Below, in pieces: positions 9,501 through 29,900 of a stretch of DNA of 64,000 bases. The notes beneath the pieces are model-generated. The model was not told the DNA's origin and did no database searches. It worked only from the letters and a program-made list of their open reading frames with translations. Every line of letters begins with the position of its first letter. Within the stretch, counting starts at the first letter, position 1. Both the position numbers and the translations under genes were made by a program. The stretch spans positions 25,110,001-25,174,000 of the forward strand of contig NC_088858.1 of assembly GCF_963853765.1 (NCBI RefSeq), given 5' to 3'. This DNA comes from Magallana gigas. Its lineage: Eukaryota.

Positions 9501-10547
9501 TTGTTGGGTGACTTCTGATCGATTTTCTTTTGAATTAAAGAATGGATCACTCAGTAGATGTAGATATTGTCTCCTTTTAAATTGTAAAATGAATATAAGC
9601 TCGAAACACATTTACATAATATTTACATTTGATGATCGTGATCGTGAAAAAGATTTTGAATTTATTAGTTCAATAAAACAAATGGGAAAATCAGGAACAA
9701 ATTTAAATAAGTATTAAGCAGCAATACTTTTGATATATAGTAGATGTAAAATTTATTGGTAACTGATAATTTTTAAATAATCTTCCTAAAAAGCTGCTCT
9801 TAAAAGAGCATGTATCTAGAGATCACTATAATACAAGTAAAACACTGAACGCTTTCCAAGAACCCTTGTTTCGTTTTCAGTAACGTTTGAGTATGCAAGA
9901 GGCGGGACATATGTTTTCTATGGTATGAATGATAAAACGAGGCACAATGCAGAATTGCGAAATTTTAAGTAAATTCCAAACCCAGCTAATCCCCTTACCC
10001 CAACAATCGGCTTGATTTGCTGTAACACTGGTACGAAAAAACGGACATTAATTGAGATGTCCAAAAAGGAAAACAGTTTCACTGCGTATTGCTTTCGAAT
10101 CTATTGTCCTTTAAGGGTTTGATACTTGTTTTAAAAAATCGTTCTTAAAACTGATGTTCAAAGCTGTAAACGATATTCGTATTTATTTCTACAACCAGTA
10201 GTTACAATAAAGTCAACTTCCAGAGCAAAAAAAAAAAAAGATAAAGTAGTATTTGATATCCAGATGATAATTTCAATACCCGGTGTGCATTACACTTCGA
10301 GTTTGAACGTTCAATTTTTGCACTGTCTACAAATACACTTGCTATATACAATACAAAATGATAATTGTAAAGAATATTTTACCTTGACAATGGTAAGCAC
10401 TTGGAAGTCCGCTAGTACCACTGAGTCGGCTTTGTATTCATAATGATACTCGTAACCGATTTCAAAATTATATGCACAGGTCTCTCTACGCAAGAAAAGT
10501 AGCCAAAATCCACACAGAGTAAAAAGATAAACAAAACGTCCCATCAT
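573..10547 (-). CDS. Gene A (5' part; continues off the left edge): secreted or membrane giant protein with vitellogenin/LLT-like N-terminal domain; paralog of gene C
   Basis: Phase-consistent GT-AG exon chain: 10383-10544/10547 (MGRFVYLFTLCGFWLLFLRRETCAYNFEIGYEYHYEY, signal peptide), 4065-4152, 3884-3920, 3624-3744 (FEFELSEDGLIKDIGHHKEDHHEVINLKKVLASVFSA), 3266-3317, 2776-2876, 2114-2211, 1854-1900, 859-913, 573-648. The last four match gene C exons in length and sequence. Confidence 0.85.
1661..1756. repeat. Near-perfect inverted repeat (32-bp arms, 32-bp spacer); foldback MITE-like, in a gene A intron
   Basis: atttttgacgtcgtcgtgtcaataaatgccgt (1661-1692) versus acggaatttattgacacgacgacgtcaaaaat (1725-1756), 1 mismatch. 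Confidence 0.8.
4214..4710. mobile_element. Non-autonomous DNA transposon (MITE), Kolobok-like
   Basis: TIRs AGGGGCATGGTCACG and CGTGACCATGCCCCT flanked by TTAA on both sides (4210-4213, 4711-4714); purine-purine termini with a TTAA TSD fit Kolobok. Confidence 0.8.
5020..5130. repeat. Remnant of an interspersed retroelement-like repeat
   Basis: GC-rich island gaggtaggatcaggtgccatggaggagtgagcttcctctgctgaccggtcacacccgccgtg in AT-rich intron; resembles oyster repeats from memory, not verified. Confidence 0.35.
7161..7363 (+). mobile_element. 5'-truncated SINE/LINE-type retroposon with poly-A tail and 13-bp TSD
   Basis: TSD aagtgaattttac at 7148-7160 and 7364-7376; internal gggttctctccgggtactccggcttcttcccaca SINE-like motif; aataaa followed by an A-rich tail. 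Confidence 0.85.
8617..8885. repeat. Degenerate tandem repeat, about 105-110-bp unit, about 2.5 copies
   Basis: Recurring ctctgctaa..atacgttt..atttgtatatgc..gtaatctttgtctgaaa..aaactttaact. Confidence 0.7.
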
Positions 10548-10835
10548 GATTACAAGAGTCCCATTCTGCTACACATCACTTTGGCGACCTGGATACACCA
10601 GGAAGTGCAAAGACCATGCCTGTTAGAATATGCGCATTAAAACCAGTTTTCTATGATTGACGTTTACTGCTTTCATGCGTTGTGCCTTTAAATGGATCAT
10701 AAACTAGGCAGAGGTCGCTCTTTTTTGGACAAGCAGGAAGATTAAATGTGAATTATAATATGTGAAAGAATTCTTGCCTACAGAGGTGTAAATGTGCTAC
10801 TAATGGTGTGCAAAGACTTAATATAGGACTACAGG
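10548..10835. promoter_or_regulatory. Probable bidirectional promoter between genes A and B
   Basis: Divergent ATGs at 10547 (minus) and 10836 (plus), each starting a signal peptide; the 288-bp spacer has a TATA-like aattataatat near 10751. Transcription starts are not known. Confidence 0.6.
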
Positions 10836-13800
10836 ATGGCAGCTGTTCACTTTGCTTTGTCTGTACTTTCTGTTTGTGTGTTTTTGACTTTCGGGTTTGG
10901 CAATGAGATTTTCTCAGAAGAGTACAAAATAGAAGAGGACATGCATGGGAGAGAACTGGTGGTTGCAAGCCGTGGACGGATCCGTAAAACAATCGACTTA
11001 AATGATCAGAGTATCGTAGCTGTGAGCAATAATTTAAATCATTTAGTAAAAACTTATATTCATATTTTTATTCATCAATAAAAAAAGTCATTTACAAATG
11101 TATTTTCTTGACTTTCGTTTTGAAAACGGTCTGACATTGTTTAAATATTTTAGCCTTCGATGTACCTATAATGCTAGTGATATGAATTTTTAATGAATGA
11201 CTAGCAAACGCTAGCATACTAAATGAAATATGCAAATATTATTACACTAGACTCATATTTTTCTGCAGAAAACGATGTGTAAAGATAATACTATAAAGGT
11301 CTCCTTGGCATCAAACATGCATGAAGATGAGTGGAAAATAGGCGACCTTGTTGTAGGAAGTTCTGCCTTGGGCTGCCGTTTGTCCTTCACAAACTCAGAT
11401 GGAGGAGTGTTTGGAAAAATTACTTATTTAAAGACCCAACGAAAGGGCCTTTTATATATAACTGTAGAAAATGCTAGGTAATCCATAATTATGCAGCGAT
11501 TTTATCAATCTTTAAAATAATTAAAACAATCGTATTATATAGCTGTTTAAAAATATGATTGCTAAGTCTATATTTATTTTCCGATTTTTTTTTTCAAAAG
11601 TCCTCTTGATGTTCTAGAAGAGGCCAATATATCACTTCATGTAAAACATCGAAGAACAAAACGCAGCAACACAAATTTTCTCTCAAACATCTTGGATAGC
11701 ATTAATTGGGAAGAAACATCAAACACGACCATACTGTTCAACAAAGACAAAAAACCTTTCTCTATTCTAAAGATGACGAACAACCCGACATTAGATGTAG
11801 GAATACTTGACTCCATAAATACAAGTCCGAACGCAGAGACGCATTTTAACTTCACCTGTACTTCTTGCTTTGGAAAAGTTGAGTTAGCTTATCATCTGTA
11901 AGTATATGTTGAAATCTTACCGTATAAGATGATAAAAAAAAAGAATAAAAATACGGTAATCTGGTCACGCAGTAGCTATAGCTTTTTGTTTAGATATTTT
12001 TTTTTAATGCAATCAATATTGCTTTATTAAATAAGAGCATTATAAAATAAAGAATATTCGTATACATTGTAAGTTACAATATGCCTTCATTTCGATTACA
12101 TAATACTGGTATGTAATATTTAATTGATATATACATGTAATTTGTTAACAATTTGAACAGGGAAATGAGAATAAAGAGAGATGTCGATACAAACAAACCA
12201 ATTGTGAAATCCTACCTCTCTCAAGTGGAAGGCGAGACCACAAACTACTATCAGTTTTCGATCCAATCACACAAAGAACTGACTCTTCTAGTTGACGAGA
12301 AAGTGATGGAAACGGATCCTTTGTTTCTTCATCCAATCACGTTAGCGACATTCAAACGATTTCCACCTTTACAACTTACAATCCGTGTCCAATCGAGCAC
12401 GTACTTAACTGCCAGCATCATTACACATTCTTCTAAAGAGTTTAAGTTTGGGGATACTTTCCAAACGTCAGGGAAGTTTGTTGTGTGTGAGTATTAATTC
12501 AGGTGTTGTTATAACTGTGTCTTTAAAGAATAGTTTTGGGGTTGTTTTTCACCAAATATTAAAATACGATTAGCTTTCATTTTAATTTAAAAAAATAATT
12601 ATTTATCTGAATTAAGAAATCATTTTAGCACTTTGATATAAGTCTTTCTACTTATGATGCATTTTTAAAATAGAAAAAAATGAATGAGTTGAAATCCTAA
12701 TTGAGCATTTTCCCTATTTTTCATTTGTTTGTCAGGAAATTTTTTGCTTTTTTTATTTGAAAAAATACGTCGTATATACCTTTACAGTTCAATAGATATC
12801 TTTATGCCAATTTATTGATCTTGAAGATTACCAATGAAGACTCTTTAACAAATAATCTCCATAAACTGCAGTTTGTTGATTTTTTCCTTGAAAATCAACT
12901 CAATCGTCATTGACAAAATATTGTCATTTTCATTAATGACGAATCAAAACTTACTACAAATAAACTACATCACAAACACAGATTATATGAAAATTTAAAC
13001 GTAATAAAATGACTTATTGAACAGGTACTCCGGGGTCTACCTTGTTAGTTAGAAGCATATGAAAAATGTGGAGATCACCAGGTTAAATGTATACAAAAAT
13101 AGTAAACAACAATGGCAAGGTGATTTCCCTTAATATAAACATATAACACTTATTGTGGTATATACAAAGTTCCGACATACATCCAATGCCTATAAGATTC
13201 CCGCCATCCATAAAAACTTAAACTTTTATTTTTTAAGAGTTAACATCATAGTTTACTTTAACTTTGATATTACAATATGTTTTAGCTAATCAGCATAGTC
13301 AACATAATGGATTACCAACAAATCATATTTCTACATATGATTGGCAGACAAACCACGTTCAAAACGATGCCGTTGAGTCCAATGATTTGTTTTCAATGAG
13401 TTTCAACATTTCCCAACAGGTACAAATGTTCCTTTTTTTAATTATAAATCTACGATCTATTGAATTTATGCAATTTGACAATTTTTGTTTGTTTGACAGA
13501 TTAGTTTAAAACCTTTCATTGAATGGGCAGAACGAGACATTAGACTTGATTTTGGATCACCCTTTACAATAAGGTAAATGAAAAAACCAGTTTGTTTTAT
13601 ATCCGTACAATATTCTTTGATGAAACAAAATAATTTATTTATCTTTCACCAAATTATATTCATATAAATGACATATACATATACTACAATGAGACACCTC
13701 TTTTGTAGGTTACAGCAAGAACTTAATTTAAAGTCAACAGTTTCTGATGTTTCACTGTGTTCCAACGTAGAGTCTCGTTTAACGAGCGCTTTCTCGTCAG

Positions 13801-16800
13801 AGAGAAATTCATTAGTTGTTGATGCTTTTGGTATTCCTATATGGTAAACAAATATCTTTTCTCTTATTAGTACTTCTAATATTTGTAAAGTTTGGTTATA
13901 ACAAATTAACCCAGATAATGATCCATTGTCATTTCGCCACATTCTTTGTTTATTGACATATTTTGTGTTATATCATGTTTTGGTATGCTTAGGGGTGATG
14001 TATCGACACTGACTATGTCTCAGATTTCGAGAGCAGCATTGGATCAACAAACTTTATCCAGAAAATGTCAAGCCAACTGTTTTGAATCTCAGTCCCTTTC
14101 AACATCAATTGATGCATGCGGTGCGCCAGGTAGTCTTGTGCTTCGAAATTCGTCGACATTTTCTTCGTAAGTATTAGACGTTCATTACATTACTGTAACA
14201 TTACATTACATTACATTACATTACTAGTGTATCATTAATGTCTAATTGATACCTAGCTTGCAAGTTTCTTGGCATACTAATCGATATGGACCAAAAAAGT
14301 TGTGTCTTATGTTGACGATTATTATAGGTCATTTGAAAGCAAATTAAAAAAAATAAAGAAAACAATGTTTAAAAAATCGATTATTTTAGTTTGCGGAAGT
14401 TATTTGGAGACACCATCATATTTCTGTCGGAAGAACCAAGTGAATCTTCGTGGTGTGGTCATCCTGGAAATCCATGCTTGGACTGTTCAAATTACATTCA
14501 AGATGACAATGTTTGCTCTGACAGATATGTTACCCCAGAATTAGCAGAAGTGTTAACTAAATTAGCAAAATTTGTTGAAGCGGAATGGCCAGATCGAAAG
14601 CTCTTGATTTTGGAAGCATGGGATGAAGCTACATCAGCACATCCACTTGGTAGTCATGGTAACCAGTCCTTGTTTTACACCGGAAGAGCAGCAAGAGTTG
14701 CATTGAGTAAAAACTTAACATCAAAAGAACCAGAGACTGATCAAAATACATTCCAGAGGTTTACCCAATTACTGCAATGCTCTGATGCTGATTTCTTTGA
14801 CACATACATGAGAAATTCCGTTCTGGACATTTGTGTTTCTGATGAATCGGCCGCTTTTTTCACGAACACCGAAAACAATAGAAAGAAAAGAGCTATTAAA
14901 TCAAACAACATTGTAAAAACAAATACTTGGAGACAAGAGAAAGATAAATATGATGAACAAATTTCTGGTTTAGGTTTGTGTATATATAAAATTTATTTTT
15001 GTGAAATACATTTAGAAGTACACCCTTCCAGCACACTTCTGTATGATCAGTCCGTTATATAAGATTGCCAATTTCTCTTGCAGTAAGTGTTTCGTCAAGT
15101 GGATCTACCCTAAAAGACTATTTTGGAGGAGGAAAGTATTATCCATCAGGAAAAACTGCGATAGATGTTTGTGGAGAAGCTGAAGATACATATAGTATTG
15201 AAAATCTGGATAAAATGCAAAGGTATTTTTAATTTATTTAAAACGTTAAAACACCACGGTTTTTATTTAACAACACTTTTATATTTTTTCTAATGTGTTT
15301 AAAAATATTGTATTTAGATTGCAATATCATTGTAGTCTTCCAAATAGGTATATAACAGCCAGTTTTGATATTGCTTCGCATTTTAATTGTTTAAAAGACA
15401 AATTCAGTATCCACTGGAAAATGTTGCATTCGAGGCCGAAGGAGCTAAGACCTCCTCATGTGGAGCACCAACGAGAGGCTGTAATCAATGTACTCGTTAC
15501 GTGGATGTAGATAATCCATGGGATTGGTGCCTAACGAGGACTATGACCACAAGGGCTGCAACAAGACTTCATCGCTTAGCCAGACTTGTAGAAGAGGAAA
15601 CAAAGTCAGGTCGGAAATTATTTCTAAAATCTCTATTTTTCGGGGCATTCACGTAGTACACAGCAAAACACAATAACAAACCGATATATTACTTTTACTT
15701 TAAGGCGGTTCAAGTTTAAGTTTGGCGGATGAAGAGTTAGGAATTTGTCGATCAGCTATGGTGATGTACGAAACCCTTGAGACGTGTATAGAAAAAATGC
15801 CGAGCTCTACTACTAATAAAGAATCAAAGTGTGTAAGTAATTGATTTGAAGAATCAAACAAAGAGTATGATTATTTTTCTTTATTTAAGAGAATTGCAGT
15901 TTTTATAAATAACATAGTTCAATTTTTTTTCTTCGAATTTATGTCTTTTTAAGGAAGAAGTCTTTTCTGATTTTCGACTTGTCAAACGTAAATTTCATTA
16001 ATTGTTCATTAAATCAAGAATCAAGAAAATTAAGAAAAGGAAATTAAAATAGTATATTTTTCTTTCTTTTTTACTATCATACAACTTGGCATAGAAAAAG
16101 TAATCAATGTTTAGAATCTAACAAGGTCTATATTTTTGGCGTAATATTGGCGTAGGAAAGTATCGCATGTTTCGCAATTCAGAATTGCTGCAGATAACTG
16201 AGTCTGTTTTGGCATTTTAAAAACAATAACTTTAATGTTGGATTTTTTTACTTATGTGAACTAATGATATGATACTTGGGTTTCAGAAAATTTGATTTGC
16301 CTATCAAATTACATTTTAATAAGCTTTTTAAAGCGCCCATTCTACACTTTGATTTTTATGAAATAATCACTAAAATAAGATTTTCTTTCTTATTAAATGG
16401 TCAATACATTAGCTTTTCTGTCAATTTATTTCTTTGTATAAAGTCTTCATATAAAACAATAATCTTCAAAATTTTAGAAAACTAGAGGAAATGCAGGCTA
16501 ATAAATATCAATTTCAGTATAAATATTTGTTCCAATTCAGTAGTATAAGCTGATAGACATTCTGATGTTCTATCATTTCATTGAAAAATAGAATGTTCAA
16601 ATCTTAAATAAAGATCTACAGAACTACAAAGAGCTACACTTATTTTTATCATCCTTTACGTTGAGGAAAAAGGTAGTGACTTTGACCTGACTTTTATGCA
16701 AAAACAAAAAGGTAAAATTTGATTAATCTGATAGAATCATTTGGTAATATGATCTGTTTGACTGTGTCAAAATTTCATGTATTTCTTATTATAAAAAGTA

Positions 16801-19800
16801 TGTTTGATAACAAGAAGACTCCTTCCTTAAATTAAATGTGAATGCAAAGCTCAGAAGAGATTTTCGTCATTCTGTTTAAAAATGTAAATCATATAATTAA
16901 TACTAATTAAAAGTTTTTTATGCCTCCTATAAAACCTTATTCTTTTTCCTTTGTATATAATCATTCATTTATGTTAGTACGATTGCATGATGGACGCCCG
17001 TTGCTGTTACGGAAACGATAATATTGGCTGCATAAGAAATGAATGTTCCGGAGATGAGAGTTCTAGTGTGTGGACATCAATAGCTTGTTCAGGTATTCAG
17101 TCGTTTCAATAAATACTACCTTGAAAAAAATTGGACAGAAGAACGTTACAACTTCACTTTCACTGTATTTTGCAGCTGTGCTTTTTTTTTGGGGGGGGGG
17201 GGTGAATATTAACAATATAGTTTGAAAATTTGGATACTGACTATGTTTTCGACAAGTATATATTTCTTTTCTTTTTACTTTTTATACAGAACTAAATCCT
17301 TTTTTAAGTGATGTTACCATACCAACAACACCAGGTATATTTTAGACTTTTTATCCCTTTAAAGCATCCCTTAGATATACTTAAGCAGTAAATGTCGTAC
17401 ATATAATTTCATTTGAATTTAATTTCTAGCATGTAACGATGGTGATAGTTCCAAGATGATCCTGTATGGAAATGTATGCGGAGGTAATATTATAATATAC
17501 GATGACTTTTTGATATATGCAATTGTTGATGATGACATTTTTTAGATTAAATAGCGGCATTATCTTTTATTACTTTACAGAACCAGTTTAAAGACAAAAA
17601 TGACTGTAAACAATTGATAATTGATTAGATAATTCCAAAAAATAATTATTTATTGAAAGCATTTGAGAGTAACCTATCGATACTTGGTTAATAAGATACG
17701 TAATATACCCTACGTTAAAAAAAGTTTTCATACATTTTTGTTTTAAGAAAATCGAATTTTAATAGGTCAGTTGGTTCAATTACTTATGCATCATTTATTT
17801 CAATAGGCGATCCTTGCCAATTTTTTACTGGAAAAGAGTATCACCTTTTGTTAAAAGTGGTTCTAATATTCGAAGTCTGTTCTGGCAAATGGGATCAGAC
17901 AAAAATCGACCAAGACATTCGGAATCTGAATACCGGAGAAAGTAATTTGATGACTTTTTTGTCTTCTTGCATGGGTAGTGACAACACAATTCTAAAACTT
18001 CACTACCCTGTTCCAAATGACCCAACAATCGGTAAGTTTTATTTAGATGACTAAATTGCATATCATACAATCTGTAGCCCTTAAGATAAAGTGTGCGTAA
18101 GTCTAAGACATTTTTTAAGTAGGACTTGATACATTCTTCGACTTAAGTCCGCAACTAGGAAGTGCTTATATGAAGCTAGAACAATTTACACAAAACTTAG
18201 ACAGCCTTCGAGAACGACTGTTATTTGTCAAAACAAACAAAAAACAAGAATGGACAAACTGCATCAACCTCAATCGATTGCTTAGTGATATACACAAAGG
18301 TTAGGTACATCTACAATACACTCATTTCACATTGAATTTTGTGTATGCATAGGCGTCGGAACCGGGGGGTGGGGGTGGGGTTCAGTTAGACATAAACCAT
18401 AATGATATTTTTTTTTGTTTTGGGGGTTTGTTTTTGCCTATCAAGATTTCTGACAAGCCCCCCCCCCCTTTTTTAATTTGCTTCCGACGCCACTGCTACA
18501 TGTATGTGCCATAATTAATAAGGTTAAGTACATCTACAATATACCTATGTCACCTTCAATTTTGTGTATATACCATTTAAATGACTTCTAAACCCCCCCC
18601 CCCCCCCACCAACCAATCCAATATCAAAGATACTTACCAGTTGTATCTATATTTAAATTGTATATTAACTTAAATAATTATCACCGATACCATCGAAGTC
18701 GATTAGGAAAATGAACACTTCAGTAATGACTTTTTAACATAAGAATAATGTTGGCTTTATGTTACGGACGAAGTACGTAGGTTCTAAGATTCAGCGTAAG
18801 TTTAAAGTATGACCCTACTTATGTCAAAATCTTGGCATGTTTTGTGTAATGAGCCCCAGACTGACAAAACACTGATTTGTTGTGCACAATTAACTTATTG
18901 AATGTTTAAGTATTTTTAGTCGCTATGTATATTTTTCAATCAGTATCCATTTATTATGCTGTTGCTCATAAATAAGGTTTAAAGATAAAAGTTTAAAAAA
19001 GATTTGATACACAATATTTAAAAGAATGCATGTAAATTACAGGAATAGGGTTTAGCCTTCGTTCATCGGAAAAGAAAGATCTGCTGTTAAAAATTTTACC
19101 AAACCTAGACTATGACCTCATAATGGAAGGCAAGCAATCCTTAACAAAAGAACAAGCACTTTACTTGTATGATGTAAGTTCTGTTATTTCAAATTTAAAA
19201 CAATAGATGTTTGGTATCGTTATTGCTTACTGTTATTCCAATTACTTTATTTTTGCGTTCTATGTCCATTTTTAGAAAACTATGAGGCGATACTACATAA
19301 AGACTATGAACAGCATTGTCCCATTTAAATCATTTATTCACTTGGACACTGCTACAAAAATTGCATTAGTTAATGCAAACTATAGAGGAGAGTTTCCATC
19401 GAAACTAAGGAAAAGGTTTAACACCGCTGTACAGGGTGGTCAGTGGGCTAATGCTGCTAATATTTATCTAAGTCATCCAGATTACAAGAGAAACAAATGT
19501 GATACCACTGGCTATGGGAGTATTTGTACCAGAATGACATGGAATGCGGAGCAGTTTAATAAACTTGCCAAAAAACAAGGTTGTATGATGTTATTATTGT
19601 AACAAATTTTTTGAGTGTTTAATTAAGAATGTATGTATTTACAAAAAACTGATTAACAATTGTTTTTTATATTAGTGAAGGTTTTAAAAAGAGAAAGTTC
19701 TTCGGCTCTTCAAAATGTTGGAAGGTATATACCTTGCATTTCATGTGGATAGTAAAGAGATTTGCTTTTGTAGAAAAAAACATACATGTTATATATTCAA

Positions 19801-22558
19801 AATCCTTCTTTTATTATTGACATTACAGATCGCTCAAATTAACTCTAACTCCTGGAGTGTCTCTGAGCACAAGTACACTTGCTAATCTGGCTGTCATCGC
19901 AGGATTTGATCACGTGACTAAGGAATCGGATCACATCGTGGCAAGTGTTCGACCAGCTAAAGGTGTAAATAGCGTTTTAGTAAACTATCCAAATGTGAAT
20001 ATGCACGAAACCGAACCCCCTGTCGATAACATGGTTGAGTATGAAATTCCAGCAGAGGCAGACTATAGCCTGACTTATCCTTTACTTCTGGATGGATTTA
20101 ATGACTCTATAAGACTTTCGGACTGTTACAAAATAGCTGATTTAAAATCTAATAAATTTAGGTATTTTAGATTCGATCCAACACTTTTAGAATGTATGGA
20201 GGAAGCAAGTAGTCACTACACTGAGTGTATTGCAGTAGAAAGCGGTTCTGGATATCGAGTCAGATCTGAAAACAATAGGAACATTGATAGTAGGCATTCT
20301 GAGGAGAAATGGCGTTTTTCAGTTGGTCAGGCTGTGGAAATTGGTAAAGGCAAAACTCTAGAAGAACTAAAGCTTCTCGGATTAACAGTTATAAGATCAT
20401 GCGTTCAGAATTTGATCCGCAAGAGGTTGATACTTGGAATTGGTGCGCACGAAGACAAACTTTATGTGGACGTACGGGAATCTTCACTAGCAGCGGAGTT
20501 TGTTAAAGTTTGGGAGGATGGATCATCTGACTTGTACACGTATCTTAAAGACATAGAAAACGGCTTCAAAAATGGTAACTAGAGAACATTTTCATAATTT
20601 ACTTCAAAACAAATTCACGAAAGAAAATTTTATTTAAGATATGGGTTTTGTCATTTGGTCATTTAATTGTGTATCCTGTCTAGGAGGTGCTTTTATTGAA
20701 CCAACAAACAAAACACGTGCATGTCAACCTTCACCGCTTGGAAAGAACTCATACTACATCAAATATTCTAATGAAGGGTAAGTGATCGCAAAGTTTTAGT
20801 AATACACTTTTATGAAAATATTTTTTAGAATTGTGTATCATTTAAACATTGACTTATAGAAGATAAAACAATACGCCATTGTCAAAGGCAAAATTTATTT
20901 CTTTTAGATCATGTAGTGCAGATACAGGGTTTTCTTCACTGTGTTCATCAACAAAATCTGAAAGACAAAAAGCTGCCGCAGATCTACTGAAACGTCTAGA
21001 TGAAGTGATAGGAAACGGACCATTAGATAAAGCATCACTTAGAGAAAAAGTCAACAATTGTTTAGTGAATCTGTGCGGAGGATGCATTGGCAAAGGTACA
21101 ATTCATAATCTGGAAAATGCAATTGATTTACAAATCTTTTTTATGAGTTTTGTAAACCAAATACAGACAGAAGGAGATGTAAGTAAAACATAAATCATAC
21201 TGTTATCAAGAACCTAATATTTCATATTTTTCTATTATAAAGGAAAAATCTGGAGGGATAAGACGATAGCGTGTTTTGACTTCGTTACCTACTTTTTGGA
21301 TGGGTCTTCTGTACCATTCCCAAATTTAAGAAATTCTGGAGCATTCTTCAATACAGAGAATACTAAATCTGAAGTTCATTCGTTGGCTTGTCATGATGGA
21401 AGTGCCTGCATTGAAAATGTTCAGCTTCATTCTTTACTTCGTACGAATATTTAACGTTTTAAAATAATAATAAAGATATTTTTTTTTATTTTTAATCCAC
21501 GCACACAAAGATTGTTGAACAACATTTACAAACACCATTCCTAGTTAAACAAATGTCATAATGTTTCTCGCTCTAATTGAATATTTAGTGAAACATTTTT
21601 TATGAATGAAAGTCACAGTTTAATCTATTTCTAAAAACAGCATTGAGAACTTTACTCTAACATGGATAATACTCAAACGATGAATGTTACACATGATATT
21701 GTTATCAAGAAGTATGCAAAGCTGATGCCTGACGAAAAAGTCAATTTTTCAGAGAAAATGATCATGGTAATGATACTATTCCAAAATAAACTAAAAGAGA
21801 TTAGAAATATTTATCATAGGAGCTCCGTCATGCTATAAGGATACAAATATTGTGATACTGATTTTTTTTATTTCAGAAGAAACATTGACGACCAAGTACA
21901 AACCAGACTCATCCCAAACTAACGAAGAACTAGTTTACGATCCAATGGACAATCCCTCCCCATTGCTCAATATTTTAGAACAAGAAATGGCCATGCGTGT
22001 ATCTGGGAACGTTTCAGTTTATATTGAAAACAATGGAGATATCTCAAGGTTGAATCAAATATTAAAGGTATGTAGAATATTAGTCAAAAATGAAAAGTTG
22101 TAAATACCTTGATTGTTTGTAAGTGATGCAAATCAATCGAGAAACGTGCAAACGTTATTAACTTAAAAAATTAAAGCTGAAAAATACACAATCATATAAG
22201 TACGCACAAACTCGCATACCATACACATATAGACAGGTGCATGACGATAAACAGAGCACTTTTAAAACGATTATTATGTTTTCAGATTCTTATGGTCTTC
22301 AACACAAAGGTCACCAATGTTCATTATCATTTGACAAATTCTGTGAGGAAAAACCAAGTTGTGGGTGCTGTTCAACGTAAAATAGAAAGATGGGCGACGT
22401 CGACGTGTCCGGACATCTCCCGTGTAACGGTCGCTCCTTTCACGGTCTCTGAAATATCTCACGAAAGACACAAACGAAGTATAGATAACAGCCAAGACAG
22501 GAATTTCGCAAAGCAACTAAGAAACAATTGGGAATTGGAGTGGCTTTCAAAAACTTAA
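10836..22558 (+). CDS. Gene B: secreted multidomain protein of about 1734 aa (signal peptide, N-terminal region, Hedge 1, split Hedge 2 with inserted GH24-like lysozyme, M15A-like peptidase domain, Cys-rich C-terminus); no HINT, no TM
   Basis: 25 GT-AG exons with consistent phases, total 5205 nt: 10836-11021, 11269-11477, 11601-11897, 12161-12486, 13286-13419, 13500-13573, 13709-13843, 13993-14166, 14390-14967, 15084-15222, 15398-15609, 15705-15832, 16978-17092, 17290-17334, 17430-17483, 17807-18031, 19043-19173, 19276-19579, 19676-19724, 19829-20574, 20684-20777, 20908-21095, 21243-21440, 21877-22067, 22286-22558 (TAA). Confidence 0.88.
14080..14850 (+). other. Hedge (Hedgehog N-terminal signalling, M15-fold) domain 1 of gene B
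   Basis: CGAPGSLVLRNSSTFSSLRKLFGDTIIFLSEE...DRYVTPELAEVLTKLAKFVEAEWPDRKLLILEAWDE...SLFYTGRA aligns by eye with Shh [76 protein letters not shown]. Confidence 0.9.
14183..14223. repeat. (CATTA)n microsatellite
   Basis: cattacattactgtaacattacattacattacattacatta in a gene B intron. Confidence 0.85.
15084..15609 (+). other. Hedge domain 2 of gene B, N-terminal half
   Basis: YPSGKTAIDVCGEA...NVAFEAEG-(Cys-rich insert)-TRTMTTRAATRLHRLARLVEEE matches the Hedgehog IFKDEE..DRLMTxRCKxKLNxLA segment, then breaks off at a phase-1 donor. Confidence 0.75.
17807..19579 (+). other. Phage/T4-type (GH24-like) lysozyme domain of gene B over exons 17807-18031, 19043-19173 and 19276-19579
   Basis: LKLHYPVPNDPTIG|IGFSL...LDYDLIMEGKQSLTKEQALYLYD and ALVNANYRG...AVQGGQWANAANIYL...RMTWNAEQF resemble T4 lysozyme LRLKIYKDTEGYYTIGIG and ALINMVF..MLQQKRWDEAAVNL. 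Confidence 0.7.
18352..18491. mobile_element. Small MITE-like element with G-tract and C-tract arms
   Basis: ggcgtcggaa..G-tract versus C-tract..ttccgacgcc inverted ends, lying between two diverged copies of about 50 bp of ggtta(g/a)gtacatctacaata..attttgtgtat. Confidence 0.55.
19676..19952 (+). other. Hedge domain 2 of gene B, C-terminal half
   Basis: VKVLKRESSSALQNVGR|SLKLTL...LANLAVIAGFDHVTKESDHIVASVR versus Shh [45 protein letters not shown]. Confidence 0.8.
20110..20480 (+). other. Peptidase M15A / M15_3 (YcbK-like) domain of gene B, Zn ligands substituted
   Basis: LSDCYKIADL..FRFDPTLLECMEEA..IAVESGSGYR..N..RFSVGQAVEI..LGIGAHEDKLYVDVR follows the M15A pattern LS.hF..D..L..L..R..SGYR..N..S.H..G.A.D..GIG.Y..HvD.R. 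Confidence 0.65.
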
Positions 22559-23725
22559 TTATATTATCCAATACTAAATTAAAGATATTTCTATTAGAGT
22601 TTATCTTTGGGGATTTGCTAAGCAATTTAGGGGTAGTGTGAAAATTATTTTATTTAACTCTGTTTATTATGTTTTAAATGGAACGATTAAATTGTTTTTA
22701 TATTCCCACAGGGGAAACAAATTAATCCTTTTTTTAAACAATTATAATCTAGCTTTATATGTCAAAATGTCATCTTTAATAAAACTAGTCCTAAGTGCAA
22801 ACCCCTAACAAATCATAATTTTGCATTCGATTTCAGTACTTCATTAGATCTGGTTTACATCATTCTGATATCTACTTCTAACAATTGTTACGTTATAAAA
22901 ACTAATTGGAGTATTACATCAATCATTTTCTGTGATAGTGACTATATCTTTTAATATTTAAAAAGAATCTCAATGCAATATTTTTTTTTTATTTCATCGA
23001 ATAGTTTGTGTATATACTTGACAACATGAATTTATTACGTTTCTTTCGAGTTGCGGACACTGTGAAACTAATGAAATTACTCGATTTCCCACGGATTTGT
23101 GAATATTTCAATCAAAGTTTTCTTTAAAGCTCATAATATTTATTCGTTTGGATTTTTTTTTAAATTCTACATAACGAAAACAAAGTGTGATTACTGATAA
23201 ATTGTTGAAGTGTTGACTATTTAATTTGAATACTTACTTAAATTTTATTATGTTCAAATACATTAAAACAATTATCAGTGCACTACAGTATGATTATTTT
23301 TTGCATGTAACTCAGAATGTTTTTAATCTATTTACACGTGTATGTACTGCTGACAATAGCTAGTACTGTTTTGAAAAAACACTTTTCCATTGATGTGGAG
23401 GACCCTGAGGGGTGTCTTGCATCTAATATTTTTTTTAGTTTTACATAACGAAAGTATGTAGAAAATAGGCGACTATACGTGTTACCAAATTCTGAAATTT
23501 AAAAAAGTGGAAAAGAAATCAAAGAGCATCAATGTAAGTGGATATTGTAAAATTGTCAATTTCAAGAGCAGGAAGATAAGAAAAAATTGTTTTGTCAATC
23601 AAATAAATAGTCAAATACTTGTATATTTTGATGAATAATATTTGAAATTTTAAAAAATTCAACGAATATTGATAAAATCACAATACATGATATTTGCATT
23701 TAAGTCTATTTTACGTTCAGTTTAA

Positions 23726-24435
23726 AGGTCATATGAAACGATTTTTAACACTATGATTTTCTTTCATAAATAAAAAGCTTGGTATAAACAAATGTTAAAA
23801 TACGTGATGTAAGATTTTTTTGCGTTTGCATTACTGAAAAATAACCGTGAAAACTGAGCACCTGAAAAAATTCTTCCCCGCTTATCGTTCTTGATTTTGT
23901 GGATTTATGACGTCACACAGACCCACCGATGTAAACAATGCATCAAAACTAGTGTAATTTTACAGTAGTTTATCGATTAGATTTTAGTAATTTTTGCATC
24001 TATGAACGTGTCTTTCTTTTCAAATGAGATCATTTGATTTCGTAGTAGCCTACAGATGACTTAATTAGTTTCAATTGGTCGTTATAATGAATAAATCTAA
24101 TATCAGCTTCTCACCAGAGTAAAATCATGATGAAGATCCCGTAAATTTAACGAAAGAAATGCTTTAACATTAACAGCTGATTAATGAATTATCCTTATCC
24201 TTTTGAGATAGAAACATCATTTTCTTCTTCTGTACGTATACTGATTGAGCAAATGCAAGGGAGGTAAGCCGCGTAAGTCAATGTTCCTTTTCCCGATTAA
24301 GTGATTTTGATCGACTGTGGCGCTCACATTTTGCATCAAATATTCAAAAAACAATGTCAGTCTTATTAAATAGGCACTTAATAACTCATTCCCGTATATA
24401 ACTGAATATGGTCAGGATATCGTTTCATATGACCT
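23726..24435. mobile_element. Kolobok-like MITE in the B-C intergenic region
   Basis: Perfect 17-bp TIRs AGGTCATATGAAACGAT and ATCGTTTCATATGACCT; left flank TTAA, right flank decayed (aaat). Confidence 0.75.
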
Positions 24436-25795
24436 AAATTTAAGATCTGTCAGCTAAAACAATAAATTTAACTTCTCTTTATCCACGTCAGGTTAAGTAT
24501 TGATCATTTGAGATTAAAAGAAAACACTGATAATCAAGTTGAAATGCAGGATCTTTCACAATCCTAACGTGCTAAAATTAAATGCGTGTCCGGCACGTTG
24601 AACTGCTTATCTTTTTTTGACTTGACTGTATTAACCAGCAGATATTACAAATAAACTTGAGCCGTGATAATGAAGAGTAAACCAAATAATTAAACCTTTT
24701 TGAAATATACAGCAAAGTTTTTATCGGTTGCTGTCTTATTTTCACAAATATGCACAAATCATTCAAACGATTTTCTTTACCTAAAGGGTTTGATAATTTA
24801 TTTAAACAATAAAATGCTCTCTTTGGTGATTCATGCGGAATGTATAATTGGCGACATTGCAGAAAAATGCATAACCCGCGTTAGCAGGTTATGTAAAAAA
24901 AATTCAGCAATGATCGCTACCTTCATAACCTGCATGAATCAACTAAGGAAGCATTTCATTGTTTATATTTACATGTACACCTTTTAACAAATTTATAAAT
25001 TTATTGAATAAAAAGTTAGTTAAATTAACTAAATCACTGTTAATGAACATAAGTAATTTAGCTAAAAGAAACAGCTAAATCTTCTCCTATGAGAATTTGA
25101 GTCTGAAATTATCATGATCATTTCGTGCAGTCTGTGATTTTTCTTAGGTTTTGACCATAATAAACGGGGTATGTAGATTTTAGTCCCATAAAATTATAAA
25201 ACTATAAAGCAACAATAATTTTCCACATGAAGTCGAGGGAATCATAGATGTAAATATAATACGTTGATTGTTGTTTATGTTTATATCCGTGTATTGCTGA
25301 ACTATTCAAAGGCCAACTGGAATGGGAATACGGTCAAGTAAAATTTTACACAAAATTATAATTTATGATAAAATGATTTTTTAAGATTTCATTAGTCAAT
25401 AGATCGGTAGTACCCAGTCCCTATTGTTAGAATACATGTCGATCGTAAACCTAATCAATAAACGGAAACTATAACGAAATGACATATTTTATTCTAAAAA
25501 AATTAAGGAAAGAATGAAATAAACCATTCTGCAATGTACACTTTAAAAATACATAGTTTATGATTCAAAAAACGTTTTGGTTATATTAAATATGTGTGTT
25601 TCATTGGACATGTAATAATTGACACAATGAAAGTAAGACAAATATACAAAATAATTTTGGCATTATATACATTAAACATCATTTTTTGATAGATTTCTTT
25701 TCCGTTTCATTTTGCACCATTTTAGTAACTTTTGAAGTTCACCTACACAGAATCATTTCCACAATAACTTGTGCAAATATCGTGTTTAGTGTGAT

Positions 25796-26947
25796 TTATT
25801 GGTCTATCTCTCCGTCGGAAAAATCTGCAACTTCAATGTTCTCCTCACCAGCAGGAATTTTCTGTTTCATCCTTATGTTGATACAAATAGCGATTATCAA
25901 TATTATAAATAGAATGAATCCAAACAAAATCATACCTATAAGTGCTACTATCTTCATCTCACATTTGTAATTATTTATCTGATCAATGCAGTTTTCCAAA
26001 ACTCTACAAGGCTGCTGCAGGCACTCATTTATTTCATTCTCACACCATGTACCAGTATATCCCGGGTAGCAGATACATTTGTATAAATCAAAAGAAGTAG
26101 CTCTAGAGATATCATTACATGGTGGAGAATCATTGAATTTAGGAGAGCAAATACCATGGTCACATGGTGCTAATAAAATATAGATATGAGTTTCTAATCG
26201 TTCAGTGTAGAAGTTTTGGTTGTCATATCCTAAAATGTAAAAAAAGAAGTCTCCGTGAAAATCTTTGTCAAGTACCATTTCTGCGGAATATTCTTGATGT
26301 GTAAAAAGGTCTTTTTTTCCAAACAAGTCTGGAATGAATGGTAATGCACTATTCCGAATTATTTTGACATTTACTTCGTTAGGGTTGGTGACAGTTGACA
26401 AAAACGATAAGGTTTCATTCTGGTCAACATCTCCAAAGCCGAAATCAAACATATAGTGCGACGTTGCGTTGCCTTCAAATCGCAGCTCTAAACTTTTGTT
26501 CGCCATTACATCAAATGTTGTACTATTGTATAGAAAACCAAACACTGGCATATCATTAACTGCCGTTACACTAATGATAATACTTTTCTCGATTACCGCT
26601 GGTAATCTGGCATCATCTCGAAGTTGAATTGTTATACTTTCGTTCCCAAAGAAATCTTGTTTTGGTAAGTAAGTCAATTTTCCATCAAGTGACAGATTTG
26701 CAAATCCAGTTTTGGGTTTTTGAATTAGGAAGAATTGAACAGAATCAAGGTCATCATCATGATAAGGTATTCGGAAGTTGATAATCGGTGTATCTTCTTT
26801 TGTCACTATTGTTTCGATATCTATTACAGGTGGGGAGTTGTAGTACGATACATTCATAGCTGTTAGCGTAAATTGGTAAGGAATAATTAATTTTATTATT
26901 GTTGATCTTTTTTTCCTTGATGGCATTTGGAAGACGTGCATACATAT
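25796..26947 (-). other. Terminal exon of gene C: RKKR site, cadherin-like/Big_9 repeat(s), EGF, truncated EGF, TM helix and acidic tail of about 25 aa
   Basis: NSPPVI..EDTP..DDDLDSVQF..NDMPVF; PCDHGIC..CICYPGYTGTWC; INECLQQPC..CIDQINNYKCE; IVALIGMILFGFILFIILIIAICINI; stop at 25796. Confidence 0.85.
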
Positions 26948-29900
26948 CTGAAACAAATGTTGGTTTGAATTAAACAAAAAAGCTAATATCATTAAAACAC
27001 TTGATTTTCTTGGGGTTTTTCTTGGACATTATTGCTTTCAGTAAAATGTCATTTTGTACATCATATAAGTTTTTATTTGCAAAAAACTAATATTTTTAAA
27101 AAATCACTGGGATAGCTTCAGCAGCTTATATATACATGACTGATAAAATGATTTGAAGTACCTTAGCTTTGTATATTGTTCCTTCAATTTTAGGTTTTGT
27201 AATGTCTTCTCCACAATTTTCCTCCACATGACGCCATATTCCATATGCTGTAATTATTAACATCCCACCTTTATATTAGGAAATACCATTGTAATACTTT
27301 ATCTAACTATTATGCCAATAGATTTTCTTATATGGCTTTAATAAATACAATGTAGGTTTTATACTCAAAATTAAGACATTTCTAACTGAAAATATAAGGT
27401 ACAGTGTACATAGGTTGACCAAACAAATTGAACTTCTTTGTTAAGGAAATCACAAAATAAACTTCGATTTTGTAAACATAATCTGGGAAGCTATTCTGTT
27501 TAATCTGCGACTAATCAGAGATGCAACATATGAATATCACTTTGGAAAGTTCTAAAAAGGCAGAATTGATTTAAAAACTATTTTTGTTGTTATACATACT
27601 TTTTGTTTTGGAATTAAAGGTGTAACTATCCCATATGAGAAGAGCTGGAACTGTGTTATATTCAAAGTCTTGTGGATTGATTTTGATGTAAACTTCAATT
27701 CTTTCGACATCCATTTCCGGAGTAGGGGCAATAAAAAAGTTGATTCCAATCGGTTTTAAAATTCTGAAGCAAAATTGATCAACATTGTGAAAATCCTGCA
27801 TTTAAAAAAAGTCATTTCATCAAGCTAACTCGAAGCCAAATTGAATTATTTGATTTATTCATATCAACTTTCACATATTTTATTTATCTGGTTAACGGAT
27901 ATTTTTCATCCATACTAATACTTCAACACATACACAGTCATATATATGTAAACATGTGCATACACGAATTTTCAGTCTTTTTTGAATTTCGCCCGCATAT
28001 ATTTACTAGTAAATTAATATTTTCCTTCCATACATAGGACAACAAAGTAGTGCCTTTAAGCAAAATAGTCCCTATACTTGCAGAGTGTATATACATTTAT
28101 TGGGACATTTTAAATCAGAATGCTTGACACATGTCAGAAAAGAGGATTTGCAATTTTTAAAACAAGTGTCAAAATTGAATTATCATTTGAAGAAGAGAAT
28201 TGAAAATGTTTGATGTACACCCTTTCCAAAACTGAGAAATTCCCTACTTTTACTTTCATTTTCAGAGTTTTTTCAATACAGTTTTGTCGGAAAACGAATC
28301 TGACTTCAAACCACGAAATTTTAACAGGAAAGAGACAATTTGATGAGCTTTCATTCAAGAGGTCCCTCGTTGCTGAACGAAAATTAGGGCCGGAGCTATG
28401 AACCATAACGTTAACATTACCGCCTATGGAAAATGCATTAGTGGACTATACCCATACATTTTTTCTGTCTTCGGTGACGTATCATTTTAATGTTTCTTAT
28501 GCAATTATAAATAATAATAATAATTAGTTCTTCTTTTAACAAGAATTGTCTTTCAAGTCTTGGGTTATCTCCAGTTATATTTTTTTGTCTGGGCAATTGT
28601 GACTTGTCCGATTTTCATTTAAACCAACGCTGTTTATTTTTGATATTATACATCATTAAATAATTTGTAAAACTTCAGATCGGAATTTGGTTTCGACACA
28701 AGGCAAGCGAAATTGCATTTCTGGTAGTCCGTCCATAACTATCAAATTTCATATCTAATAGATTGGAAGTTTAATCAGTAAAATCTTAAAGTGATTTTAA
28801 GGGGTTTATTAAATAACAAATATTCATCTTTGAAATTATAAAAAAAATTGATTATTAACATATTTGTTATATGTTGAAGTTAACATTGAAGTCTATTGGA
28901 AAAAGTATTTTTAAATATAAAATTTAAGTACAAGTTATTTCCTCACATGACTCTTGGTAAAAATTTGATATTTCCTTTTCTTCTAATATCCTAAACTAAT
29001 TCATAAATTACCATATATATTTTTATAAAATGATTCTTTTTAATTTCATAACAGAAAAAAGTTTGTAGTGCAAAAAAAAATTCATTAAACTGACTATATA
29101 CATACTCCCGATTTGGGTTTATGTCAACATTATGATAATTTTAAAATACGTATTTGATGTAGTATTGCTCAATCAAAATTCGCCTTAGTTATGGATGGAC
29201 TACCTTATTACATTGATGTACAATAATGACAATATACTGAAATATCAAAATAAGCAGTGTCATTTTACCATATACATTTACATTGTATATTTTACAAAAT
29301 GATAAAAATGAAACAATTACACATACAAATATTATTAATGAAGTAATTTCTGTTAACATTGACGCCGAACGGCTCAGCCAGCTCAATCGGTTCATCAAAT
29401 CATATTGACATAACCAAAAGAAAAGGTTTGTTGAAACAGCATGTTTTATATTATATGTATGTTACATGTGATTTAAAAGTTATTAATTAGGGTTTTTTAA
29501 TATAATAAATATATCTTATAAAAAAAATAATCTAATCGCATGAAATTGCTTTTACAAATTAACATTACTAATATACATGTACAGGTGTGTATGTTACATA
29601 AACCTCGTTTGAAAGATTTTTGGTTTGTGTATGTAAAAGGCCTTGTCAGAATCATTATTATTTTTTTGCATTTGTTTTTCCTAAATAAAGAAGTTACATG
29701 ATTGGATAGGACAGGATAGTATAAGATAGTATCTGTAGGATAACATGCAAAATAAGGGATATGATAACATTGCAGAAAAATGGGGAGCTTTCAGGTGTGT
29801 GGCACTGTAGACATGCACGAACACACGTATGCAAATACATAGAAACATAAAAACAATTATGTGTACCGTATTTAGCAACTTCCAAAACTCGTCAGCTATG

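Follow-up and report, generated by a model that had tools for sequence, protein, structure and literature searches.

The stretch of DNA analyzed here, referred to as the window, comprises 64,000 nucleotides of contig NC_088858.1 of the oyster Magallana gigas (NCBI RefSeq assembly GCF_963853765.1, positions 25,110,001 to 25,174,000) and is AT-rich, with a GC content of about 31%. A gene on its + strand (10836-22558 in window positions, which are used throughout) encodes a protein of 1736 amino acids that consists of a signal peptide, an unassigned N-terminal region of about 500 residues, two domains of the Hedge type (Hedge 1 and Hedge 2), a domain resembling M15A peptidases (M15A-like) and a C-terminal region. 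Hedge 2 is interrupted by a cassette of seven exons, and we consider it highly probable that the gene harbors a lysozyme-like module that was gained once, is nested within Hedge 2 and is included in all transcripts seen. In our judgement this nested-domain architecture is real and well supported, was previously undescribed and has a clear evolutionary path. The elements that it combines are of known kinds, namely exon shuffling, Hedge-domain proteins and the co-opted lysozymes of glycoside hydrolase family 24 (GH24) in bivalves.

Exon structure of the gene

The exons were first read from the sequence and then tested against RNA over positions 14350-20340, using the contigs of runs X3, X5 and X6, which originate from three studies, and the raw reads of a stranded polyA run, X21. 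All predicted junctions are of the GT..AG type and present in each of the three contig sets, and spliced contigs of 4.5-6.2 kb from X3, X5 and X6 include the complete set of seven cassette exons. The raw reads of X21 cover every predicted junction except the one from 15832 to 16978, and their strand signal is consistent with an mRNA from the + strand. Upstream of the cassette, an exon at 14390-14973 is joined to the one starting at 15084, and 15222 is joined to 15398; both junctions are found in the contigs of X3, X5 and X6 and in five raw X21 reads apiece. For the exon of the N-terminal half of Hedge 2 the RNA uses the acceptor at 15398 and not the AG preceding 15408. The features from the start to the end of Hedge 2 are given below, with the evidence for each in brackets.

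15084..15222, + strand: exon encoding a linker and the N-terminal start of Hedge 2, entered in phase 1 and left in phase 2 (RNA junctions)
15398..15609, + strand: exon of the Hedge 2 N-half, ending with ...LARLVEEETKS and one base, G, in phase 1 (RNA junction 15609->15705, homologue alignment, model)
15705..15832, + strand: cassette exon 1, Cys-containing linker, phase 1 to 0 (RNA junctions)
16978..17092, + strand: cassette exon 2, Cys-rich linker, phase 0 to 1 (RNA junctions, alignment)
17290..17334, + strand: cassette exon 3, short linker, phase 1-1 (RNA junctions)
17430..17483, + strand: cassette exon 4, Cys-containing linker, phase 1-1, conserved in Pinctada (RNA junctions; Pinctada locus L013, 6368-6427)
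17807..18031, + strand: cassette exon 5, phase 1-1, lysozyme-like N-terminal extension, first helix and hairpin, up to ...NDPTIG (RNA junctions, HMMER)
19043..19173, + strand: cassette exon 6, central part of the lysozyme-like domain, phase 1 to 0 (RNA junctions; within the hhalign match to phage lysozymes)
19276..19579, + strand: cassette exon 7, encoding the C-terminal lobe of the lysozyme-like domain, phase 0 to 1 (RNA junctions, hhalign, ESM Atlas)
19676..19724, + strand: small exon, phase 1 to 2, with the Hedge 2 beta-strand VKVLKRE...NVGR (RNA junctions 19579->19676 and 19724->19829)
19829..19952, + strand: Hedge 2 C-half, SLKLTL...LANLAVIAGFDHV...HIVASVR (Pfam HH_signal, PDB sequence matches, model)

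The original prediction, made from the sequence alone, had Hedge 2 stop at 15609 in phase 1 and restart at 19676 in the same phase, with seven exons in between (15705-19579) that begin and end in phase 1 and encode Cys-rich linkers and a lysozyme. The stop and the restart are reproduced by the RNA contigs and by the raw polyA reads, the exon boundaries are confirmed by RNA, and the lysozyme part is borne out by hhalign. Direct joining of 15609 to 19676 is in frame as claimed, with G and TG combining into the codon GTG (Val) in ...EEETKS-V-KVLKRE, and the sequence-level observation is thereby confirmed in all details checked. The cassette exons have lengths of 128+115+45+54+225+131+304 = 1002 nucleotides, or 334 codons, and form a symmetric 1-1 block. 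Exons 1-4 contribute a Cys-rich linker of about 115 amino acids that yielded neither a Pfam family nor a usable match in the ESM Atlas, and exons 5-7 the lysozyme-like part of about 220 amino acids. The exon that starts at 19829 runs to about 20578 and encodes the M15A-like domain beyond the Hedge 2 C-half.

Relatives were sought among 1.84 billion representative proteins with the exon 19830-20579 as a query. This yielded 56 relatives, and follow-up searches led to P0061, a transcript-derived protein of 1736 amino acids with 98.9% identity to the spliced window, which was used as a stand-in for the window protein. P0061 represents a cluster of 313 transcript-derived sequences whose listed full-length members have 1735-1736 amino acids. 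It contains Hedge 1 at approximately 549-680, the N-half of Hedge 2 at 753-823, the cassette at 824-1157, the C-half of Hedge 2 at 1158-1217 and the M15A-like region at approximately 1250-1423.

Note that in X21 four of the six reads across the 19173 junction carry AAATT in place of AAAAC at 19276-19280, the start of cassette exon 7. An apparent joint from 19173 to 19281 in this run was considered as an alternative isoform and rejected, as it is the same junction with five differing letters; the difference is allelic and alters the second codon of the exon. In the introns, the stretches 15950-16950 and 18350-18550 show RNA on both strands at a depth equal to or above exon level, and many loose ends there lead into unrelated sequence. 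Their appearance is that of expressed repeats or transposon copies that are not part of the mRNA of the gene.

Hedge 2 and the intron at the insertion site

Hedge 1 is readily recognized, its exon alone reaching 40 bits against the Pfam family HH_signal (PF01085, gathering score 22.1 bits) with Hedgehog N-domains as PDB sequence matches, and when single window exons were compared to Pfam it was the sole match. The C-half of Hedge 2 alone aligns to positions 111-159 of the HH_signal profile (E 7e-4, 19.8 bits), and its top 23 PDB sequence matches are all Hedgehog N-domains. The N-half alone gave no HH_signal match in the Pfam search; it matches Hedge 1 of the window with an E-value of 0.0026 and can be aligned to the N-half in more than 15 homologues. 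P0061 as a whole reaches 53.3 bits for HH_signal in two stretches.

The cassette had been predicted to sit inside a single Hedge domain, and a search for relatives without it had been suggested as a check. In more than 15 cassette-less homologues, which range from scallop to amphioxus, Hedge 2 is contiguous, its two halves being only about 20-25 residues apart. They include proteins from Pecten, Sinanodonta, Solemya, Haliotis, Batillaria, Argonauta, Octopus, Lingula, Owenia, Asterias and Branchiostoma, and also a shorter Saccostrea paralogue. In several of them HH_signal crosses the insertion site in a single stretch (e.g. residues 271-370 of P0010 on profile positions 60-156, and 71-159 in another), and the whole-protein scores reach up to 54-77 bits, with the best stretch crossing the site. 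The strand VKVLKRE of the small exon aligns to IRVLKAFEE and IKVLMSHKE in homologues and corresponds to the strand VKLRVTE of Shh, such that VKVLKRE...NVGR in the window is the equivalent of VKLRVTE...EGR. The insertion falls into the loop that connects the long helix (Shh ...MNQWPG) to the next beta-strand, VKLRVTE in Shh.

Structure prediction had likewise been proposed to see whether the two halves assemble. An AlphaFold model of P0061:745-1225, calculated with an alignment of 25 relatives, has a predicted local distance difference test score (pLDDT) of 76-86 on the Hedge parts and a low one on the insert. With the low-confidence stretches trimmed, VIA-align placed model residues 1..476 on residues 68..192 of the N-terminal domain of Shh (ShhN) with a Z-score of 14.0 and a root mean square deviation of 2.4 Å for 117 residues. 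The 31 best rows of this comparison are all Hedgehog N-domains, and the next are VanX and MepA at Z-scores of 7.4-7.5. In this cassette-bearing model, both halves of Hedge 2 are predicted to reassemble into one Shh-like domain around the insert, and the co-folding, together with the contiguous homologues, upholds the placement of the cassette inside one Hedge domain.

The insertion site coincides with an intron in relatives. Pecten has a phase-1 intron of about 580 nucleotides exactly at this position (...SKIQ C/gtaagt ... ag/TG, with slashes at the splice sites), followed by an exon of 66 nucleotides that ends after NVGR in phase 2, an arrangement that matches the 49-nucleotide exon 19676-19724 of the window. 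Phase-1 introns are found at the same site in Haliotis, in Branchiostoma (...AQLN G/gt ... ag/CC) and in a paralogue on contig C3 of the oyster genome (...GLQ G/gt ... ag/GA). A homologous small exon with the same phases is present in Pecten, Haliotis and the C3 paralogue, and Branchiostoma has the phase-1 acceptor before the strand in common with them. As the phase-1 intron is common to molluscs and amphioxus, it is older than the protostome-deuterostome split. It lies at profile position ~96 and is distinct from the canonical hh intron, which is found about 20 residues upstream, at profile position 77, in the oyster's own hh gene.

This canonical hedgehog gene is located at C5:46170505-46178777 on the - strand, with a Hedge domain in two exons that are split at profile position 77. 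The cassette-less paralogue at G000:C3:35195083-35198993 (L012 5083-8993) comprises Hedge-like exons, the phase-1 intron with the small exon and an M15A-like region, and is just 30-44% identical to the window gene.

In exon shuffling, phase 1-1 modules are inserted into phase-1 introns of extracellular proteins. Such an event in a loop of the Hedge fold had been put forward in the original prediction, and the data agree with it: the insertion point is an ancient phase-1 intron, as exon shuffling predicts, the phase of the block equals the phase of the receiving intron, and relatives retain the intron without the block. A block that resides in a phase-1 intron must be 1-1 in order to hold the frame, and the symmetry of the cassette is thus explained without regulation. 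We infer that it is the footprint of an insertion and not a sign of regulated skipping.

Other readings of this exon arrangement have to be weighed against a nested insertion. The peptide encoded by 19676-19952 might belong to a separate, N-terminally truncated third Hedge domain, with Hedge 2 simply ending at 15609, and read-through of the donor at 15609 does yield GRKLFLKS, with a faint likeness to the missing strand (RKLLILE in Hedge 1). This likeness, however, is missing in the intron of the paralogue, and in Pecten it is made by the GTAAGT donor consensus; GRKLFLKS was accordingly also rejected as an intronic relic of the original strand, the downstream small exon being the conserved strand in all relatives. 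As the orthologues have one contiguous domain with an equivalent small exon and an alignable strand, and as the two halves co-fold with a Z-score of 14, the third Hedge domain was rejected and its probability is close to negligible. A further possibility, raised with the original prediction, is that the cassette is a regulated alternative block and that the gene makes both a contiguous-Hedge and a lysozyme-bearing isoform. An isoform without the cassette would stay in frame and restore precisely the ancestral junction of the cassette-less orthologues, and the donor at 15609 (GTCGGA) is off consensus. Nevertheless, a joint from 15609 to 19676 was found neither in the contigs of X3, X5 and X6, which contain the inclusion form only, nor in the raw reads of X21, a test across four studies with low power for a rare isoform, as X21 provides two reads per cassette-flanking junction and contigs lose rare forms. 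Depth in X21 is not reduced in the cassette, with 10.5 in the fully exonic bin 19350-19549 compared to 7.2-7.5 in the flanking exons. The five RNA-supported RefSeq isoform models of Ostrea edulis vary at the N-terminus, in an exon of 25 amino acids and in the C-terminal region, and none of them skips the cassette; no oyster protein cluster of the skip length, about 1400 amino acids, was found; and the phase symmetry is uninformative on regulation for the reason given above. Every transcript seen includes the cassette, and the splicing switch is unsupported and in our estimation improbable, although a minor or condition-specific skip isoform may have escaped these data.

The lysozyme-like insert and its origin

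The assignment of a lysozyme to the insert is supported by several lines of comparison. A profile of the oyster and Pinctada sequences, aligned by hhalign to three phage T4-like lysozymes from GenBank, gave a probability of 95.8% and an E-value of 8e-9 over 108 columns that include the TIGIG hairpin and the helices of the C-terminal lobe. In a phmmer search of the PDB the six best matches are T4 gp5 or T4 lysozyme (E 0.34-1.2), and HMMER aligns cassette exon 5, which is conserved in Pinctada at L013 6667-6909, to the N-terminus of the T4 gp5 lysozyme. With tblastn against 2.3 Gb of phage genomes the best E-value was 0.05; 16 of the 20 best matches fall on annotated lysozyme or endolysin genes, and the others on apparent ones, as judged from identical placement in duplicate or near-identical records. 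In the ESM Atlas a mollusc Phage_lysozyme cluster scored 0.93 and was followed by Pesticin. A model of the lysozyme part alone has a mean pLDDT of 50.8 and is a weak pointer only; when this low-confidence model was submitted to Foldseek, nearly all of the top 50 matches were chains of T4 lysozyme (T4L), T4L fusions, gp5, P22 lysozyme or pesticin, with E-values of at least 0.06 and high root mean square deviations. Cassette exon 7 is present as a single copy in the genome, according to a six-frame search.

On these grounds we accept exons 5-7 as encoding a putative, strongly diverged homologue of T4-type (GH24) lysozymes. Acceptance extends to homology as judged from sequence, and not to membership of the set of active enzymes. 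Glu11, Asp20 and Thr26 (T4 numbering) are invariant in the three phage lysozymes aligned. In M. gigas, an Asp is found at the position of Glu11 and a Thr at that of Thr26, and the position of Asp20 is a Pro that follows a deletion of two residues. Ostrea and Saccostrea paralogue A have an acidic residue (D or E) six positions before the Thr, and Pinctada has a Glu at position 11 and a His at position 26. As the module in M. gigas retains only part of the T4 catalytic triad, binding would seem at least as likely a role as catalysis.

Cassettes are borne by Saccostrea echinata and S. cucullata (two paralogues each), by Ostrea edulis (two tandem genes) and by M. gigas, and in Pinctada imbricata cassette exons 4-7 follow one another in order and precede the exon of the Hedge 2 C-half. 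In a maximum-likelihood tree of the Hedge 2 and M15A-like regions, calculated with the cassette removed, all cassette bearers form one clade (96/93) inside a pteriomorph clade (99/96) that also holds two scallops. The parsimonious reading is that the cassette would have been gained once, on the stem of the Ostreida (true oysters and pearl oysters), after the scallops had split off. From the taxon range we estimate the insertion to be several hundred million years old. The lysozyme part is as conserved across oyster genera as the Hedge parts are (62-74% and 63-77% identity, respectively), which fits a constitutive and selected part of the protein. The proposed path then starts from the ancient phase-1 intron of the gene family, in the helix-strand loop of Hedge 2, as the receiving site. 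A seven-exon 1-1 block of linker and GH24-like module would have been inserted once into this intron on the Ostreida stem, the two halves of Hedge 2 would reassemble around the insert, and Hedge 2 would act as the scaffold that carries the lysozyme-like module.

A number of points weigh against this reading. The predicted co-folding of the Hedge 2 halves leans on an alignment that contains contiguous homologues. The cassette part is of low confidence in both AlphaFold models, with mean pLDDT values of 51.4 and 50.8, such that the lysozyme fold and its placement relative to Hedge 2 rest on sequence-level evidence. No lysozyme match was obtained in Pfam, in PHROGs (for the window protein and two orthologues) or in a search of the PDB with the oyster profile, and PF00959 in particular was matched neither by P0061 (E <= 5) nor by any of the six reading frames of the genome. 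Six-frame searches of the same 564-Mb assembly of 29 contigs, in which the module is unique, revealed neither a donor gene nor another GH24 copy, and in a word-based protein search for stand-alone lysozyme relatives the sole matches were fragments of orthologues from genomic exons. In the examined part of the Pinctada locus, which may end too soon upstream, a search for the Hedge 2 N-half and for cassette exons 1-3 gave no significant match. The missing profile matches, the low-confidence fold and the individually weak E-values might suggest that the insert is an unrelated helical, Cys-containing module that produces T4L signals by chance. Against this stand the hhalign result and four independent weak searches that converge on T4-type lysozymes only, and we regard a chance likeness as very improbable. 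As to timing, the cassette could instead be ancestral, present in the molluscan or the pteriomorph ancestor, and have been cleanly lost several times. Precise loss is mechanistically easy, as the deletion of exons within an intron keeps the frame, a short insert rich in Cys at this position in the scallop Ylistrum balloti is a possible remnant, and the sampling leaves out mussels, ark shells and pen shells. In all lineages sampled outside the Ostreida the cassette is nevertheless absent (two scallops, a unionid, a protobranch, two gastropods, two cephalopods, a brachiopod, an annelid, a sea star and amphioxus), its bearers form one nested clade, and a single gain stands against at least five losses; an ancestral cassette has a low probability in our view. 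Within the favored reading of a single gain by nested insertion, the module may tentatively be traced to a GH24 gene that the Ostreida ancestor acquired separately from a phage or a bacterium and that was captured directly into the phase-1 intron and later split by new introns, a possible but on balance unlikely course of events. If true, phage-lysozyme co-option would reach the Pteriomorphia, from which it was reported absent, and the gene would be a dated natural case of horizontal transfer feeding exon shuffling. The product would be a composite extracellular protein that targets peptidoglycan and is built from three or four cell-wall-hydrolase folds, with Hedge as the scaffold of the lysozyme.

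Some observations on individual relatives are added here. In Pinctada, an intron of about 17 kb (L013 ~10300-27700) separates the lysozyme exons from the exon of the Hedge 2 C-half. The gene model of P. imbricata (P0003) is partial and apparently contaminated by an intronic retroelement: it includes about 190 unrelated residues from this intron, with a sub-threshold match to RVT_1 (E 0.013), that look like a retroelement wrongly annotated as protein. The model P0001 of S. echinata (LOC133197027) is without the 38 amino acids of the Cys-rich cassette exon 2, which are replaced by a short stretch of unrelated sequence. In Ylistrum balloti P0006 (~255-320), the short Cys-rich insert contains RRKR and is situated in the same Hedge 2 loop, and the usual strand is absent; a small insertion of independent origin, a relic and an intron read-through in the annotation are all conceivable.

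Possible function and comparison with known systems

The zinc ligands of mouse Shh (H141, D148 and H183) define the peptidase-like site and not the Hedge domain itself. In an HMMER alignment to 4C4M, these positions are occupied by Q, K and V in Hedge 2, and the first two of them by F and R in Hedge 1. Given the lost zinc ligands, both Hedge domains probably serve as binding or scaffold modules. The M15A-like region (19960-20578) has kept SGYR...N and RH; the spacing of its H-x6-D motif is widened and the motif ends in Glu, the last His motif reads LYVDVR, and the Pfam matches to Peptidase_M15_3 obtained in relatives are all sub-threshold. This region, too, is probably not a standard zinc peptidase.

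Hedge (with the LAS fold), M15A and GH24 are all folds of peptidoglycan hydrolases. The presence of these three folds behind a signal peptide makes an extracellular role on peptidoglycan-like glycans the best guess, and the protein most likely binds or processes such glycans outside the cell, in immunity or digestion. For oyster biology, it is nominated as a candidate peptidoglycan-binding or lytic factor. We found no paper that describes this protein, and one orthologue has been reported just as an unnamed differentially expressed gene: S. echinata LOC133197027 is an unnamed entry among the genes up-regulated in male pre-spawn oysters (PMC12564202). The gene reveals a cryptic T4-type lysozyme-like sequence in oysters, where a published survey found none (PMC5303276), and the diverged module has evidently been overlooked until now. 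It is also an unusually clean natural case of a domain within a domain, with each step legible from genomes.

The order of a Hedge domain followed by an M15A-like region is shared by an uncharacterised bilaterian family with members in Asterias, Branchiostoma, Owenia, Lingula and molluscs. More distant Hedge proteins were seen in a choanoflagellate (C2, Peptidase_M15_4 and HH_signal, 2145 amino acids) and in the sponge Oscarella (Trypsin, PLAT and HH_signal, 2253 amino acids); the proteins concerned, in the family and among its distant relatives, are P0031, P0036, P0039, P0016, P0041 and P0045. The findings point to a secreted bilaterian family of Hedge and M15A-like domains, composed of folds of peptidoglycan hydrolases and with two Hedge domains in its molluscan members, that bears on the roles of Hedge domains before and beside Hedgehog signalling.

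Compared to the Hedgehog N-domain (PF01085, with the LAS/M15A zinc-peptidase fold; ShhN in PDB entries 1VHH and 4C4M), Hedge 1 passes the Pfam threshold, and the two halves of Hedge 2 together superpose on residues 68-192 and keep the GR...LA.LA..AGFD.V motifs. Pfam detects no Hint family in P0061 at E <= 5, and the oyster protein, which is without the Hint/Hog autoprocessing domain, is thus not a Hedgehog protein. It differs further in the tandem arrangement of its Hedge domains, in the M15A-like domain that follows them and in the insert of 334 amino acids in the helix-strand loop. With the T4-type lysozymes (the product of gene e, the gp5 domain, P22 lysozyme and pesticin) the module has profile homology that starts at the TIGIG hairpin and includes the C-terminal lobe; an acidic residue occupies the position of Glu11 and a Thr that of Thr26. 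The module deviates from these lysozymes by an identity of only about 25%, below Pfam detection, by an extra N-terminal segment of about 50 amino acids and by added cysteines, as well as by its introns and its location within another domain.

The bivalve co-opted phage lysozymes (BCPL) are of GH24 type and have gained introns, and three of them are fused to other genes (PGRP, MALRD2 and HSPG; PMC5303276). They were reported in Heterodonta and Palaeoheterodonta only, with no match in Crassostrea gigas, a member of the Pteriomorphia (Ren et al. 2017, PMC5303276). Both they and the oyster module are GH24-type sequences in bivalves, but the BCPL fusions are end-to-end, whereas the oyster module is nested in a domain and far more diverged. 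In line with classic exon shuffling, the oyster cassette is a 1-1 block in an existing phase-1 intron of a gene for a secreted protein, with cassette exons 3, 4 and 5 also being 1-1 and with Cys-rich linkers; unlike there, the receiving intron is situated inside a compact globular domain and not between modules, which results in a nested domain. The arrangement may also be compared with the engineered insertion of T4L into receptor loops for crystallography (e.g. CXCR4-T4L, PDB 3OE6); such fusion chains were among the Foldseek matches. In both, a loop of the host protein accommodates a domain of T4L type, and the oyster case differs in having a long linker on the N-terminal side and in being natural.

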